Assembly: GCA_021613535.1 (NCBI GenBank)
Contig: CP075496.1
Location: forward strand, 2,046,001 to 2,110,000
DNA: 64,000 nt
DNA from: Adineta vaga
Taxonomy: Eukaryota > Animalia > Rotifera
Direction of reading: 5' to 3'
How positions within the stretch are numbered: position 1 is the first letter of the stretch; every line of letters starts with the position of its first letter. The translations under genes were made by a program, and so were the position numbers. Positions 43,102 to 49,100 of the stretch are shown piece after piece. The notes beneath the pieces were generated by a model. It had not been told where the DNA came from. It was given only the letters and a program-made list of their open reading frames with translations, and did no database searches.

Positions 43102-46100
43102 TTATGTCATACCGGATTCTAACCGAGAAAATAAAAGAATTTAATTACTTAGACAAGAATTATCGAAATTACCAATAGCAATTTTCGAAAGCATAGTATG
43201 AGCAGAAGCGGTATCACATTCGAGCGAGGTTAGTCTAATAGATGACATAAAAGCATGGAATTGATCATGCGTTCTAGTATTCTAAAACTTACCTTGAAGT
43301 CGAAGAAATATTTCGTGATTGTCGTTGTAGAATTGTATCATCATCATCGTCTTCGGGTCTAAATTTTTAGAGAGAGAAAAACATAGAGATAGATTGTTTT
43401 CAAAAGAAGCATTTTATGCGCCCAAATAAATCATCTGTATATATTTTATGTCACTCACACGTAATGGGAATATTTCGCGAGCGAAATAGTTCGCACACGT
43501 TTTCCCCATGATGATGAATTCCTAAGATATCAAATCAATTTAAATATATAAGTCGAGAAGAAATCATAGTAACGCATTTAATTGAATCGAAAGTAAAAGG
43601 AAGTACTACTTACTTAGCAAGATAAGTTGGAGTTTGATATTGAGATAATGTTGTTTGCATCAATTCAGATTCTTTTTGATCATTTACAAACATTGTTCGA
43701 GATTGAAGAAGTTCTGTTGGACTCATTGTCTTCACTTTTTGTTCTAAATAATGAACAATTAACAAAAAAAGAACAAGTTCGATGGGCTTTATTCAATTAA
43801 TTATTTATCAATTCATTCATCCATATCGTACGTCAGTAACGTCAAACGTTTTTTCACATGATCGTGATTACAGGTAATACGGAAAGGGTTTTCTTTACTT
43901 TTTTCGGTAAACATCGTCATGATTCATCATCACTCTGATAAAAACTTACCATCTTCCTTTTTCATTTGGACTAATTCATGTTCGTTAATATATTTAAATT
44001 GTCGAGCTAATGAAAACAACAAGAATATAGAAATAAGAATTGATCGATCACATACGTTTCGGTTGTGGCGGTGAATCTTTTAAGCCACTTTCAAAAAATT
44101 TCTTTTTATCTTTAAAAGATCTTTCGGATCCTGATACGGACATATCAGACTAAATTAGAAATTGAATTCGATGAGAAAAAATTTCGTTTCGAATCAATAA
44201 ATAATTTACTTCATCGATTTCAAAGCCATTTTGTGGTTGAATTCGTGGAGAAGGTAGATGAAAGGTAGTTGTTGCCTTTTGATTGTCACCATTGGTTGAA
44301 TTTAATGGACGAAATTTCGGTTTAGCAGGAATAGGAGGTGGTTGTGGAGACTGTAAAAACAAATGAGTCAATGAAAAAATAAGATCGATTAAACTTACGA
44401 TGGGACTTGTAGGTTTTGAATTCAAAATTCCATTGGATTTTGGTGAAGATGGTTTCTGTGCTACTGTCGAAGTCGAATCATTTTGTTTAGATTTTTTATT
44501 CAAACCAGATGTTGAACTACTTGGAGTAGTTGTCTAAAAATAAACAGATAAACAAAATTAAACAAAACCAAAACTGAAAATATATTTACTTCGTTTGCTT
44601 GAAATCCATAACAAACAAGTAAATTAATCGTTTTCTCTTGTACACTAAGCCATTTTTGAGCATCATCCAAACGAGCACCAAATAAACTTTGATTATTAAC
44701 CTAGATGTACAAGAAACAAAACGTTAAAAATATCCAATAAATAAAAGACAAAAGAACGCAATTCTCATTTGTTTCCCGACATAAATATAAATATGTATGT
44801 ATATTTTGCCTCATTCGTTACATAAAATACTAAAAAGAAATACAAATATCTATTAAATATATATTGTTTTGTTCAATTTTAAAATAATTTTCCATAAGAC
44901 ATTAATAAAAGTAAATAAAAACTGAATAATTTCATGACAATATCATACATAACAGCTCGAGCTAAAATCTGACCAAGTGCTGGAGGTGGTACATCAACTT
45001 GTTGATTATTAGTCGGTAAAATTTGTTCTTCTTCAAGAACAACAGGTGTTTCTTCAGCTACCTGTCGTAATGATGTAGCAAGTGAATCAAGAATTTCATT
45101 TCGTTCTTCATCATTATCAATATCAGTATGAATAGCATAGATAATTTCATTAATTTCACATAGATTTAATTGTTTCGTTTCTTGAATATTGAGATATTGT
45201 TCAGATGCAAGTGAAGATAAATCAAATAGATCATGAGATGAATTATTCGATGAAAGATACATTTCAACGGCATGTAAAAGATTAATTGATTGAAGTGAAA
45301 TACGATCGAATTGACTATTATTTGGATCAAATTTTAGTGGTAAAGCATTTTCATTCGAACAATACAGACATTCTTCAGGATGAATTTGTTCATCGAGAGA
45401 ATATTGTTGTTTAATTCGATAATTTGATAAGGATGTATATGAATGTACGAGAAATGTTTTCGGTGTTGAAGAAATTGGTACAGATGGATCGAACGAAAGT
45501 GATTTACAGGAGAATTGAGGTGTTTCATGTTTAATGACAGGTAATGGTTCAATTGATTTCTCATCATTTGTAGGTGATGGTGATGATGACGATGATGAGA
45601 GTGAAAATGAACTTGATATTAAATCTTTTAATGTAACAATTGGTGCGAGAATATGTTCGGTAAACGTCATGTCTTTTTTCGTTTCATTGAAATTTTTCTT
45701 TGTCGAATGAAATAATGCTGATAAACAACATGAACGAGTTTTTCTTTGTTGACGAATTTTTGTTCGCTTCTTTTTCATTATATAACCACTTGACCGTGTA
45801 CGTTTTATATGAAATGATGATAATTTTTCTAATGTTAATAAACCTTTTAAATGAACGATATCATCTAAACTTGTTTCACAATAATCTCGTATTGTTCCAT
45901 AATCCATTGATGATGATATGGATGATAAAGATGATAATGTACTAGTTATTGAAGGAGATTTATGTGATAAACAAAACCATCGCTTGGAACATGAACAATT
46001 CACTGCCTAGAATAATCGATATTCTTGAACATACGTAAACTTTGGGTCATATCAAGCGAATGGACGAAGATACATGAAGCATTAGCAGCTTGAGAAAGAA

Positions 46101-49100
46101 CGAAACATATGATATGGAAAAGAAGTAAATTCATTCGATTCATTAATCAACCATAATGTATATGTGTGTGTGTGTATATGGGTGTATTTAGTTTTGAATT
46201 TATACTTACAATTTAGTGAATCAATATTGATTAAATGATAAGATTTCAAACAACATAACGACATCGATATAAAACACGTAACGAATGAGGCAAAACATTG
46301 CGATCATAACGGTAATGGTTCCGACAAAGTGAGGTGTACGTACTAAAGAATTATGGTTTTTATCTTACCTCTAATATTCGAGTACCAACTGTTATCAATC
46401 CAGATGCTGGACTATTTTCTTTGACCTAATGAATTTAAAAAAATAGAGAATTAGATAGAAGAGAACGTCTTAATTCAAAATACAAACTTCAGTAACGAAA
46501 ATTCCATCGTCATCAGGATCATTAGGATTAATATGTTTACCATCTACACCACCATTAATACGAATACCAAGTGCTTCATTCGATTTTTTTGTCAAAGTAA
46601 TTTCCTAGAATGAAAAAAGAAAAACTCAGATCATTGAATGAAAACGAAGTTTTTAATTTGATTCTACTTTTAATCCAATTGGTTGTTGTTCATGACGAAC
46701 AAGTAGAACAACTTCATTTGTTGGTTGTAAAAGTGCTTGAACAGCTTCTAAATGTGTTGCTTGTGTTACATCTTGATTATTAACTTTTAATATTCGATCA
46801 CCAATACGAAGATTTGTTCGCGAAGCAGAACCATTCGAAAGAATCTATTGATGAAAACAAAAAGACACAAACATTCATTCATTCATTCATTTCTCATTTC
46901 AAACTTTACCTTTGAAACAAATACACCACGTTGTTCCACACCAAATGGTGGACATGCTTGATCACTACCACCAACAATACTTAAACCCATTGGACCATTG
47001 CCTTTAGCAACACGCGCTTCCTAACAAAATATATCTTTAGTTTTTTAAATAAAAAAACTTCATTCAACAAACTTCAATCGTATTATCAAGTATTTTCATT
47101 GTCGAATTAGAATTTCCATTGATTATCTTTTCTCGATAACATGTTAATTGTACATCATTTCCACCGTTATTAATCAAATCAATTGCTTGATTATGATTTA
47201 AATTTATTGTATCATATCCATTAATCGATAAAACTCGATCACCGATATTTACTGGACTTTGATTATTTGTTTTTGATATATATAAATTTTCATTTTTCTC
47301 CGTGGAATATCCACCATCATCATCACCACTACCACCACCGGCAACTGAAAATCCAAATTGCCCACCTTGTTTATCATTTCGATGAAGAATTGTTGAATAT
47401 TTTTCGCCTTCCTTTAACGAACAATTTCCATCTTTTGAAAGATAATCATCTGATGATTGAAGAATTTCACGTAAAACAATGACTTCAAAATGATCACCAG
47501 CTTTTTTCAAAGCGGATACAGCTTCACTATGTTCGCAACTAACCAAAGATATTCCATTAACTGACAAAACTTTATCACCAACAAGCAAACCAGCATGACC
47601 AGCTGGACCTTCTTCGGTAACTTTAGTTAAAAATATACCCTAAGAAGAAAAAAAAAGCACGAATTAAAACTTTTAAATAGAAGAAAAGTATTTCCGATGA
47701 ATGTATTTAGTCTAATAGGTTTGTTATGACAAATGAAAGTAATTCTTGATTATCACGAAAGATTACTTACATAATCATCATCTTTATATGCTGATGAACC
47801 AATACCACCGGCAATACTTATTCCAAGACCCGTATTTGGTGAACGATGAACTGTAACGGTGATTTGTTCATGATGAATTGTCATTGGTCGACTGTTACTT
47901 GTTAATGTTGGTGATATCGACTAAGAGTAAAAATTTATGATCGAAATAAAATCAAGTTTATCTTTATTTCTTACATCTTTTCTTCCACTTGCAATTGAAG
48001 ATTTTGTTGGACTATGTAACATAATTTGCTAAAAGAAAAAAATTTTTGTCTTTCTTTTGTTCTAAACAGAAAAATTCAATGAAAATTTACATCAAGAGTT
48101 ACAGGATTATGTTCTTGATTTAGAATTCGTTTATTTTTCAAATGATGTGGCGTATCACGTCGATGAAGTTTTTGTTGAGTATGAGATTGTTTATCGTCAT
48201 CATCATCATCATCACCACCACCACCACTATGTAAATCATCTGTAAATTCGACATGTTTCTCAATATATGTCATATTTTCACCGGGATTTTCATTATGTTC
48301 ATTCTAAGAAAACAAAACTGATTGAAAGAAACAAAAAGAAAAAAGATTTACATCGAAATCAGGATGACCATCAATAGATAATTCAGGTGGAATATAATCA
48401 GTTGAATCTTTATTCATAGGTGATCGATTATGTTGATTATTTGATGCTCCTGATGAGATTGATGGATGTGAAGAATTCGGTTGAAATGGATGTTGGTGAT
48501 CATGATGAAGTAAATTTCCATCAGTTTGAATTTTTTTAGCCATTTTATTTCTCCATGATCGTAAATCTTTCGGATGAGGAGTATTATGTCTTTGTAATGA
48601 ACTCTATTGAAATGAATCAAGTTTTTTTCAAAACTATGAATGACAAAAAAAAGAAACCATACTTCTTTATTTTCTTCTGATTCATCAGCAAATTTAACTG
48701 AACCAGCACGTTCATGTTTTTCATTATCGATGAAATCATCTTGTTGAAAATACATCGGACGTGCGACGGGTGTTTCGTCACTAACATTTTGACATTTAGT
48801 TGTATTGAGAAGATTTTCTAAATTAAATTAAGAATATCGATGAATTACGAACTAATAAGTTTTCCCCTTAGCAAAAAAAGAACAAAAGTTAGCGACATTT
48901 GTTTACCCTGATTCATTTCATCATGATCATCCTCAATGAAATAAATATATAAAGGACGACGATGTAGACGTAAGAACATGATTCTATACAACTTATGATT
49001 GAAATAAAACAAAATATAACAGAAGGATTAATATTAATGACACGAAAGGTTAATAACATTTGAAAAAGAAAATCTCGAACAAACGAATTAAATATCAATG

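Follow-up and report, generated by a model that had tools for sequence, protein, structure and literature searches.

A conserved, usually start-less open reading frame within a scribble intron of Adineta vaga and its possible use as an alternative Scribble C-terminus

The stretch of DNA analysed here (the window) comprises 64,000 nt of the Adineta vaga assembly GCA_021613535.1 (CP075496.1:2,046,001-2,110,000, forward strand), and all coordinates refer to positions within it. The host gene lies on the minus strand and is LAP/Scribble-like, with N-terminal LRRs followed by PDZ domains, as seen from Pfam matches in its exons to LRR_8/LRR_14 at 48913-50015 and to PDZ at 47064-47588. The host domains were searched exon by exon, and since the exons of PDZ4 are singly too short for Pfam, the count of four PDZ domains was read by eye from the exon peptides; LRRs followed by four PDZ domains are likewise found in the Scribble/LAP scaffolds Drosophila Scrib, human SCRIB and C. 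elegans LET-413. The canonical intron that interrupts PDZ4 is 1668 nt long, with introns elsewhere in the genome being about 50-60 nt, and contains an open frame of 375 codons (Table 1). The exon preceding it ends in GGT ACT CGA ATA TTA GAG/GTAAGA (donor GT at 46368-46367), and the split of PDZ4 at RILE/VNNQSLFG, which an earlier sequence-only reading of this DNA had proposed, is borne out by spliced RNA contigs from three runs, in which the junction from 46369 to the exon at 44700 has a depth of 36-87. Of the gene's own acceptors, 13 of 14 end in TAG, and its donors read GTAAGT or GTAAAT.

Table 1. Features of the scribble intron and its flanking exons (window coordinates)
Feature	Coordinates	Strand	Basis and remarks
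PDZ4 middle exon	46369..46425	-	sequence, spliced RNA contigs, exon peptide; phase 0 end, donor GTAAGA
Canonical intron, 1668 nt	46368..44701	-	interrupts PDZ4
Proximal sub-intron, 362 nt	46007..46368	-	blocks A, B/B' and C conserved (alignments of 11-13 lineages)
Box A, 5' duplex arm (TTTTGCCTCATTCGTTAC)	46278..46298	-	inverted repeat I1, 21 nt, 95% complementary; core invariant in all lineages
Box C, about 55 nt	46042..46094	-	35-90 nt upstream of proximal acceptor; conserved in both ohnolog clades
Proximal 3' splice site TTCTAG	46007..46012	-	invariant; fits the gene's own acceptors
Open frame, 375 codons (46006-44882) plus TAA (44881-44879)	44879..46006	-	sequence, homologues, RNA contigs
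C-terminal hydrophobic tail, candidate tail anchor	44882..44956	-	Kyte-Doolittle, conservation, predicted helix
Intron remainder, ORF stop to distal acceptor, 178 nt	44701..44878	-	without AATAAA or ATTAAA
Box A', 3' duplex arm (GTAACGAATGAGGCAAAATAT)	44801..44821	-	starts 58 nt past ORF stop
Distal exon, second half of PDZ4	44590..44700	-	junction with 46369 in three RNA runs

The region of the supposed proximal acceptor reads TAG (46009-46007) GCA GTG (46003-46001) AAT TGT, codon 2 of the frame being GTG. The 375 stop-free codons that the sequence-only reading had placed behind this acceptor are present on the minus strand where it had put them, and the adjacent CAG (46005-46003), which it had expected to give an immediate stop if used as the acceptor, is directly followed by TGA. 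At a GC content of about 29-30%, roughly 8% of random codons are stops, and the probability of 375 open codons is by arithmetic near 1e-14, which excludes a chance origin of the frame, in agreement with what had been supposed. The features described for the product, namely a Cys cluster, a basic tract followed by S-CC, a Ser-rich stretch, acidic parts and a terminal hydrophobic stretch, were all found. In the AlphaFold2 model of the ORF, residues 1-208 are predicted to be disordered, with helices predicted at about 237-257, 281-294, 298-318 and 343-373; because the mean pLDDT is 49.8, fold matches to this model would mean little. A Pfam search of the ORF gave no match, and no relatives were found by PDB sequence profile, in the ESM Atlas or with Foldseek on the AlphaFold2 model. 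An exhaustive HMMER search with the family profile returned 18 representatives, all from the same family, at most 349 aa long and without a fusion, and neither this search nor a length-limited word search yielded a domain-bearing protein of more than 380 aa, so that no fusion has been predicted or assembled there. As judged by these searches, the ORF protein is without relatives outside its rotifer family. A reading as a BH3-like motif with a tail anchor was dropped, the motif being degenerate and nothing supporting it.

Database homologues of the frame number 42, with 41-74% identity (P0051 being the most distant), and all are stand-alone entries of 74-380 aa. The frame is shared among bdelloids and is found in the same intron in 18 rotifer lineages, including the second (ohnolog) scribble copy of this genome, the ORF-in-intron arrangement being kept in both ohnolog copies and at all other loci, and it is open over 325-386 codons in the 15 lineages with complete ORFs. 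It has to be noted that the Logan contigs of homologues (L003, L039-L046) retain introns and therefore look genomic, not RNA-derived. Across rotifers, the dN/dS comparison proposed earlier as a check points to purifying selection, with pN/pS of 0.42-0.60 in every block of the ORF at synonymous divergences of 0.3-1.4. For the 14 codons after codon 2, the window and L011 differ by three synonymous and no non-synonymous changes, and over all pairs pN/pS is 0.47, like the remainder of the ORF; a DYCET motif is conserved at about codon 38. Judging from these codon comparisons, purifying selection acts on both ends of the product, the N-terminal Cys cluster as well as the hydrophobic tail.

Four of the 18 lineages have ATG as codon 2, the others having GTG, GTT, GTC, ATT or ATC. 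GTT and GTC are not near-cognate starts, and non-AUG initiation at codon 2 is ruled out for the nine of the 14 lineages without ATG that carry one of them. The lineages with ATG are dispersed over the tree as singletons, their closest relatives being without it, and the first in-frame Met may be as far downstream as codon 176 (L004), about 197 (L046), 250 (L011) or 256 (L021). The nested gene starting at an internal MDYG, which had been the main alternative in the sequence-only reading, is disfavoured by this comparison, in that the Met is private to the present copy, its site being occupied by TPIDD in other lineages, and the N-terminal peptide is constrained.

At the 5' edge of the frame, TTCTAG/GCA is invariant in 18 lineages, and the TAG of this acceptor doubles as an invariant in-frame stop two codons upstream of codon 2. 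In 11 loci, a GTRILE/GTAAG exon precedes the ORF by 265-440 nt, and L010 and L018 show the exon in the alignment. The donor exon (GAG/GT) leaves off in phase 0, in which the ORF also begins, so that the two frames are continuous at these loci, and no upstream exon other than that of PDZ4 fits in all lineages. An ATG-bearing mini-exon in the first 362 nt of the intron was rejected, there being no phase-0 ATG..GT segment common to all lineages, as was the Kozak-like CCGCCATGG as a start, which pairs with CCATGG downstream and is thus better explained as part of an RNA duplex.

The duplex formed by boxes A and A' is conserved and brackets the ORF; one arm follows closely on the donor and the other closely precedes the distal acceptor, with the distal PDZ4 exon 90-201 nt downstream of the ORF stop in all lineages with flank. 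Its calculated dG is -30 to -45 kcal/mol in 11/11 lineages, as compared with -14 to -20 for shuffles, and a compensatory change is seen in L039/L044, where TTTTGCC/GGCAAAA has become TATTGCC/GGCAATA. Box C is a candidate for a branch-site region, an element of splicing control or an intronic promoter; RNAalifold pairs its CUGCUU with AGGCAG at the acceptor (6 bp, weak).

The best 19-residue Kyte-Doolittle window of the ORF protein scores 1.74-2.23 in 14 lineages and is in each case the final one, leaving 0-6 residues up to the C-terminus. The tail is predicted to be helical (AlphaFold2, pLDDT 75-81), and conservation at the protein level holds for its sequence as well as for the stop position. 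With its single hydrophobic helix at the extreme C-terminus and its basic flanks it resembles tail-anchored proteins, from which it differs in the conserved D/E and K/R, four residues apart, that leave an uncharged core of 13-15 residues. Of the possible tail anchor suggested earlier, the conserved hydrophobic C-terminal segment thus stands, whereas its role as a membrane anchor appears borderline, the segment being sufficiently hydrophobic on the Kyte-Doolittle scale but containing these charges, and palmitoylation is purely conjectural.

The RNA evidence consists of assembled contigs, which have a depth of about 5 over the ORF region and from which rare forms are dropped by assembly. The ORF is transcribed, being covered by contigs in four runs at a depth of 5-13, roughly 1/7 of that of scribble, with contig depth being a poor measure of level; two further introns of the gene, of 206 nt and 131 nt, gave no RNA contigs. 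A search of the assembled contigs of three RNA runs, a form of data in which rare forms are lost, gave no 46369/46006 junction. The X1 contig 45786-46044 is collinear with the genome to 38 nt upstream of the acceptor and unbroken at 46006, which suggests that unspliced RNA predominates over spliced RNA at this site in the X1 run. No contig covers 46045-46367, a gap that means little because coverage is patchy, with about 40% of the ORF lacking contigs in the same run, and no loose end at 46006, as would arise from spliced-leader joining, was reported in the contigs of any run. At the other end, the X14 contig 44673-45448 is collinear from the ORF through the intron remainder into the next scribble exon. 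AATAAA or ATTAAA is found between the ORF and the next exon in 4 of 13 lineages, and given this scarcity together with the X14 contig, it is unlikely that the ORF forms a terminal exon with a poly(A) site of its own; since most lineages show no poly(A) signal ahead of the next exon, its entry would be most aptly called alternative 3' splice-site use.

The explanation that we find somewhat probable is that the ORF is entered at TTCTAG/GCA (46006) from the GTRILE donor (46369) in phase 0, and, as part of that explanation and with the same reserve, that the frame belongs to the scribble transcription unit as a coding exon and is no self-sufficient gene; a conserved frame that usually is without a start would most likely be read as an alternative Scribble C-terminal end. 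Use of the proximal acceptor would excise the 362-nt sub-intron and make the downstream scribble exons 3' UTR, and the product would consist of the Scribble LRR region, PDZ1-3, the first two thirds of PDZ4 and then about 375 rotifer-specific residues, in which a long disordered part rich in Cys and Ser is followed by three helices and, as a possible membrane anchor, a hydrophobic helix at the C-terminus. By looping out the ORF, duplex A/A' may place the donor beside the distal acceptor and so promote the canonical isoform, while the proximal acceptor would be available when the duplex is unformed. The cis-splice itself, the anchoring in a membrane and the control exerted by the duplex are inferences. 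On the comparative evidence, this alternative C-terminus truncating PDZ4 is the only model predicted to give a translatable product in every lineage, because the frame is start-less in most lineages, the in-frame acceptor invariant and the Cys cluster and tail under selection. The proposal of an alternative Scribble end that breaks PDZ4 is therefore upheld on its comparative side, but not by the RNA contigs, from which its junction is absent. Two further considerations weigh against the fusion: cutting a PDZ domain mid-way is structurally odd, and a stop codon upstream of several exon junctions is a typical target of mRNA decay. A wider version, in which bdelloids possess a membrane-anchored Scribble (LRR-PDZ1-3 plus the rotifer-only module) under control of a duplex switch, and in which the ATG lineages use the same acceptor both in cis and in trans and so also make a free protein, appears distinctly doubtful.

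An independent nested gene would, as in other bdelloid nested or trans-spliced genes, lie on the same strand within its host intron with an acceptor right before its first codons; it would have a promoter in or near box C, be trans-spliced to the spliced leader at TTCTAG/GCA and start at the adjacent ATG, or, in lineages without this ATG, either at an unconventional start or at a Met further downstream, which in this copy would be that of MDYG. The conservation of box C is promoter-like, the X1 contig extends beyond the acceptor into a region followed by the uncovered 46045-46367, and ttctag/GCA ATG in the four lineages that have it resembles a trans-spliced gene with a 3-nt leader. Moreover, bdelloids trans-splice >50% of their mRNAs (PMC1925144), and the 23-nt bdelloid spliced leader has 59 genomic copies here, as compared with 0 in the control. 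This leader, however, is without ATG, which rules it out as the source of the AUG that 14 of 18 lineages lack at codon 2, nine of them having GTT or GTC there; most lineages are without a poly(A) signal of their own, and the peptide upstream of any Met, which may be 176-256 codons in, is under purifying selection. The stand-alone database proteins, which at face value speak for such a gene, are the output of ORF callers run on genomic contigs, with GTG or TTG as 'starts'. A nested gene is thus possible but rather unlikely.

Quite improbable is the use of the ORF as an internal cassette exon, entered at 46006 and left at a MYDI/GTN donor (about 44941) that joins VNNQSLFG, by which about 355 residues would be inserted into PDZ4 without the hydrophobic tail. 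The NCBI Rotaria models P0040 and P0041 do join the ORF in frame to the downstream scribble exon, but at different junctions, which looks like ab initio prediction; similarly, the Val codon at the supposed donor is GTG in 10 of 11 lineages, yet GTCATG/GTGATG is a poor donor in comparison with those of this gene, the protein-level conservation of tail and stop position continues past it, and the X14 contig is collinear across it. That the RNA over the ORF is merely retained-intron or unprocessed scribble pre-mRNA, with a frame that is rarely or never translated and is either a relic or conserved at the RNA level, is regarded as highly improbable: the contigs are of low depth and continue unspliced through 46006 as well as 44700, the two ends of the ORF, and the intron does contain conserved RNA structure, but contigs are absent from the gene's other long introns, the frame has stayed open in all 15 lineages with complete ORFs, and RNA-level constraint would not spare third codon positions as the pN/pS in every block indicates.

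To return to the alternative C-terminus, long-range intronic duplexes that loop out exons are known from Drosophila Nmnat, 14-3-3zeta and Dscam. Here, too, two complementary boxes flank the optional part, with a compensatory change; in contrast to the Drosophila genes, this part is a 1.1-kb coding region to which an alternative 3' splice site would give access, the introns of the genome being short elsewhere, and we infer the effect of the duplex. The locus may offer a compact natural system for studying how a long-range duplex lets a spliceosome attuned to 50-nt introns skip 1.3 kb.

Scribble is a deeply conserved core polarity and tumour-suppressor scaffold that is thought to be only peripheral at the membrane, the known proteins being attached to the cortex via the LRR region and, in mammals, also by N-terminal palmitoylation. 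Drosophila scrib is known to have alternative isoforms with differences in the PDZ region or at the C-terminus, and no Scribble isoform with a hydrophobic C-terminal anchor was found in the literature searched; the added 375 residues have no relatives outside the rotifer family. If the proposed splice is real, the last PDZ domain and the C-terminus would be traded for a lineage-specific anchored module, which would amount to a new wiring of Scribble, and an orphan coding sequence would have served as an optional exon throughout the history of the clade, predating the bdelloid genome duplication. The same reading would account for the annotation of this locus, where 'hypothetical protein' calls with GTG or TTG starts, or chimeric models, are found.

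The sequence-only reading had described a Scribble-like host gene whose fourth PDZ domain (PDZ4) is split by an intron and, within that intron, a proximal TAG acceptor followed by 375 codons with no stop (the ORF) that end in a hydrophobic stretch. Both descriptions agree with what is found in the window (C4:2046001-2110000; the genome measures 100.8 Mb and is in six pieces): Pfam identifies LRRs and PDZ domains in the host, and the peptides read from its exons give four PDZ domains, the last being the split PDZ4, the exons of which are individually too short for Pfam. The canonical join from 46369 to 44700 is found in spliced contigs of three RNA runs at a depth of 36-87, and 13 other introns of the host gene, likewise confirmed by spliced RNA contigs, measure just 48-206 nt, which makes the 1668-nt intron bearing the ORF an outlier.

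Features of the PDZ4-splitting intron, in window positions, and spliced-leader matches elsewhere in the genome
Feature	Position or extent	Strand	Remarks
PDZ4 exon with ..GTRILE	ends 46369	minus	followed by GTAAGA
Donor to proximal acceptor	362 nt	minus	end reads ..ATTATTCTAG
ORF	375 codons from GCA GTG AAT TGT TCA TGT ..	minus	TAA stop 44881-44879
Intron remainder after ORF stop	178 nt	minus	next exon starts 44700
Box A	46278-46298		pairs with box A' (44801-44821); 21 nt, 95% complementary
Spliced-leader exon matches	C1:2551160-2551336, C5:9884356-9925969 and others (L033-L038) in this genome (G000)		

A second copy of the ORF, with 57% identity, is present on piece C1 of this genome, in the equivalent intron of a second scribble gene, where ..GTRILE and the donor GTAAGT are followed by 388 nt and then by TTGTTCTAG GCA ATG AAT ... 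Among the homologue loci taken from metagenomes and public assemblies, an exon ending in ..G(T/N)R(I/L)LE before GTAAG lies 265-440 nt 5' of the ORF in every locus with enough flank, and the VN(N/G)QSLFG exon lies 90-201 nt 3' of its stop in those with enough flank on that side. The ORF tree has two clades matching the two copies of this genome, so the placement of the ORF within the intron is older than the duplication of the scribble copies. The most divergent member of the family, P0051 (230 aa; contigs of SRR23617308 and SRR20627849), reads MRGYCELGLDELLL .. LVSELVMKFFGVYLVLLVAVVVVMRDQRILFK; it is shorter than the rest, its uncharged tail is longer, and the called protein has no N-terminal Cys cluster. 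Another protein, P0049 (113 aa), has the N-terminus of the family followed by an unrelated segment of bacterial look, ..PNSGIPEAAFAGALEVQLGG.., and is probably a chimeric metagenome contig.

At a GC content of approximately 30%, a run of 375 stop-free codons is not a chance event, and a word search returned 42 proteins of 212-380 aa with 41-70% identity to the ORF, all unnamed or "hypothetical", the NCBI-named homologues coming from Rotaria. The conservation across rotifers on which the earlier reading had staked the ORF is seen in pairwise dN/dS values of 0.24-0.70 over its body, mostly 0.25-0.5, at a dS of 0.3-1.4, and pN/pS is 0.42-0.60 in all six blocks of the ORF, with neither the first 14 codons nor the hydrophobic tail standing apart. 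Judged from these sequence comparisons, the ORF is a real coding sequence. It belongs to no Pfam family, has no relative in the PDB by sequence profile, no usable match in the ESM Atlas and no match in a fold search with its model, while HMMER, run exhaustively against 1.84 billion representatives, retrieved 18 proteins, every one from the ORF's own family. The AlphaFold2 model is weak (mean pLDDT 49.8): residues 1-208 are without structure, three helices fall within 237-318, and the C-terminal end forms one long helix (343-373) with a pLDDT of 75-81.

As read from the aligned lineages, this coding frame is without a start codon of its own. An invariant TTC TAG GCA precedes it in 18 lineages, and the codon that follows GCA is ATG in four of these (L002, L003, L010, and L025) and GTG, GTT, GTC, ATT or ATC in the others. 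The four ATG lineages are singletons on the ORF tree, L003 being sister to L039/L044 (GTT) with a support of 100/100 and L010 lying among GTT and ATT lineages, so that codon 2 behaves as an ordinary aliphatic residue (V/I/M) and not as a start codon. The peptide after codon 2 is preserved mainly via synonymous changes among the start-less lineages, e.g. three synonymous and no nonsynonymous changes between the window and L011, and three and one between the window and L004. The first in-frame Met is found at codon 176 in L004, 250 in L011, 256 in L021 and approximately 197 in L046, well 3' of the conserved motifs, one of which is DYCET near codon 38. The internal Met of MDYG, at which an independent nested gene would start in the alternative raised earlier, is peculiar to the window copy, which speaks against that alternative. 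An upstream start on unspliced RNA is ruled out by the in-frame TAG two codons upstream, and translation of the N-terminus thus requires a sequence to be joined by splicing at the AG of this TAG. If the RNA is left unspliced, a frame of 10 codons starts at an upstream ATG (46030-46032 to 46000-46002) and its TGA overlaps the GTG codon, and further out-of-frame ATGs are present at 45989-45991 and 45979-45981; on a transcript born in the intron, these would be an obstacle for ribosomes scanning toward Met34.

With regard to what could be spliced on, the bdelloid spliced leader (SL), which we take to be the 23-nt (T)GCTTATTACAACTTACCAAGAG, has 59 copies in the genome versus none for the reversed control and contains no ATG, so that trans-splicing would be unable to supply the start, ruling out the SL as a source of the AUG. 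A 23-nt SL is established for bdelloids (PMC1925144). The SL exon matches often form head-to-head pairs with a spacing of about 154 nt, with clusters on C5 and C2. An ATG-bearing mini-exon was also rejected, the first part of the intron holding no phase-0 ATG..GT segment common to all 11 lineages, as was the conserved Kozak-like CCGCCATGG, which differs in frame between lineages and pairs with CCATGG 3' of the ORF. The one exon constantly present, in frame and with phase 0 at its end, is the PDZ4 exon ..GTRILE, and the proximal acceptor resembles those of the host gene, which have TAG at their end in 13 of 14 cases.

The RNA data, which are assembled contigs and not raw reads, cover the ORF in four runs at a depth of 5-13 versus 36-113 for the scribble exons; host-gene introns of 206 nt and 131 nt have no contigs, so the ORF RNA is more than generic pre-mRNA noise. 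A contig from run X14 (44673-45448) extends from the ORF over the remaining 178 nt of intron and on into the exon that follows, and canonical poly(A) signals between the ORF and that exon are absent from the window and from 9 of 13 lineages. The ORF RNA thus seems to run on into the 3' scribble exons, for which reason the event is classed as alternative 3' splice-site use and not as an alternative terminal exon. The expected junction between 46369 and 46006, however, is in none of the assembled RNA contigs, which counts against the splice. So does a contig from run X1 (45786-46044): it is collinear with the genome and unbroken through the proximal acceptor, whereas the X14 graph is broken at the distal acceptor, where both spliced and unspliced forms exist, which implies that in X1 unspliced RNA at 46006 is at least as abundant as any spliced form. 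The stretch 46045-46367 is without contigs, which is no proof of an intronic start because about 40% of the ORF is also uncovered in the same run.

The intron also carries a long-range RNA duplex between box A and box A', with an invariant core TTTTGCCTCATTCG in the intron alignment. Its predicted energy is -30 to -45 kcal/mol in every one of the 11 lineages for which both flanks are available, as compared with -14 to -20 for shuffled partners. L039 and L044 have a compensatory pair (TATTGCC/GGCAATA; elsewhere TTTTGCC/GGCAAAA). Since its arms lie shortly 3' of the donor and shortly 5' of the distal acceptor, formation of the duplex would place the ORF in a loop, which would befit the host intron equally whether what it skips is an exon used optionally or a gene nested there; the duplex supports regulation and alone does not decide between the two.

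Taken together, the evidence tilts somewhat toward an isoform of Scribble in which PDZ4 is broken and the C-terminus is a new one, possibly anchored, and such a fusion is, from sequence considerations, the sole model that would give a translatable product in every lineage. The fusion is absent from public gene models and assembled proteins (word search and exhaustive HMMER), and nothing on a tail-anchored Scribble was found in the literature searched. A nested gene, starting in some other way, agrees with the unspliced RNA in X1 and has no Met shared across lineages near its N-terminus; we regard it as unlikely, albeit worth keeping in view. A cassette exon draws on two Rotaria models, P0040 and P0041, that splice the ORF into the downstream scribble exon, but they do so at two different points (..VRAI to ILFGAHLDD and ..MYDIV to NNQSLFG) and so look like ab initio artefacts, leaving this explanation very improbable; these NCBI models begin within the ORF or pass through it, indicating that annotation pipelines mis-handle the locus. 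An untranslated RNA, set beside the dN/dS and pN/pS values, is given still less credence, and the rest of the weight is reserved for explanations not thought of.

As for the possible anchor of the fusion isoform, the last 19-residue window is always the best Kyte-Doolittle window (score 1.74-2.23, with 0-6 residues beyond) and basic residues flank the tail on either side, yet the tail contains a conserved D/E and K/R, spaced by four residues, and an uncharged core of just 13-15 residues. The proposed tail anchor stands as a plausible candidate, and palmitoylation may be conjectured for the Cys cluster or for the conserved CC that follows the basic tract.

Two further pairings predicted by RNAalifold, box A UUGCCUC with the 5' splice site GAGGUAA (7 bp; 46286-46292 with 46362-46371) and CUGCUU of box C, a conserved element upstream of the proximal acceptor, with AGGCAG at that acceptor (6 bp; 46077-46082 with 46003-46008), are short and invariant, hence lacking covariation support, and serve as leads only. 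By virtue of the former pairing, box A' (GAGGCAA) resembles the scribble 5' splice site itself. A conserved donor-like motif, GTAAGT in clade A and GTGAAT in clade B, is located midway along the proximal sub-intron (46196-46209 and 46123-46132; block aligned in L002, L004, L010-L012, L018-L021, L031, and L032). The local hairpin that encloses this motif has arms (AAGTATAAATTC with GAATTTACTT in the window; for clade B, GGTGAATGATCATCACC with GGTGATGGTGGTCATTCAT) that differ in sequence between the clades with their complementarity preserved, and the motif may be a 5' splice site that is sequestered or acts as a decoy.
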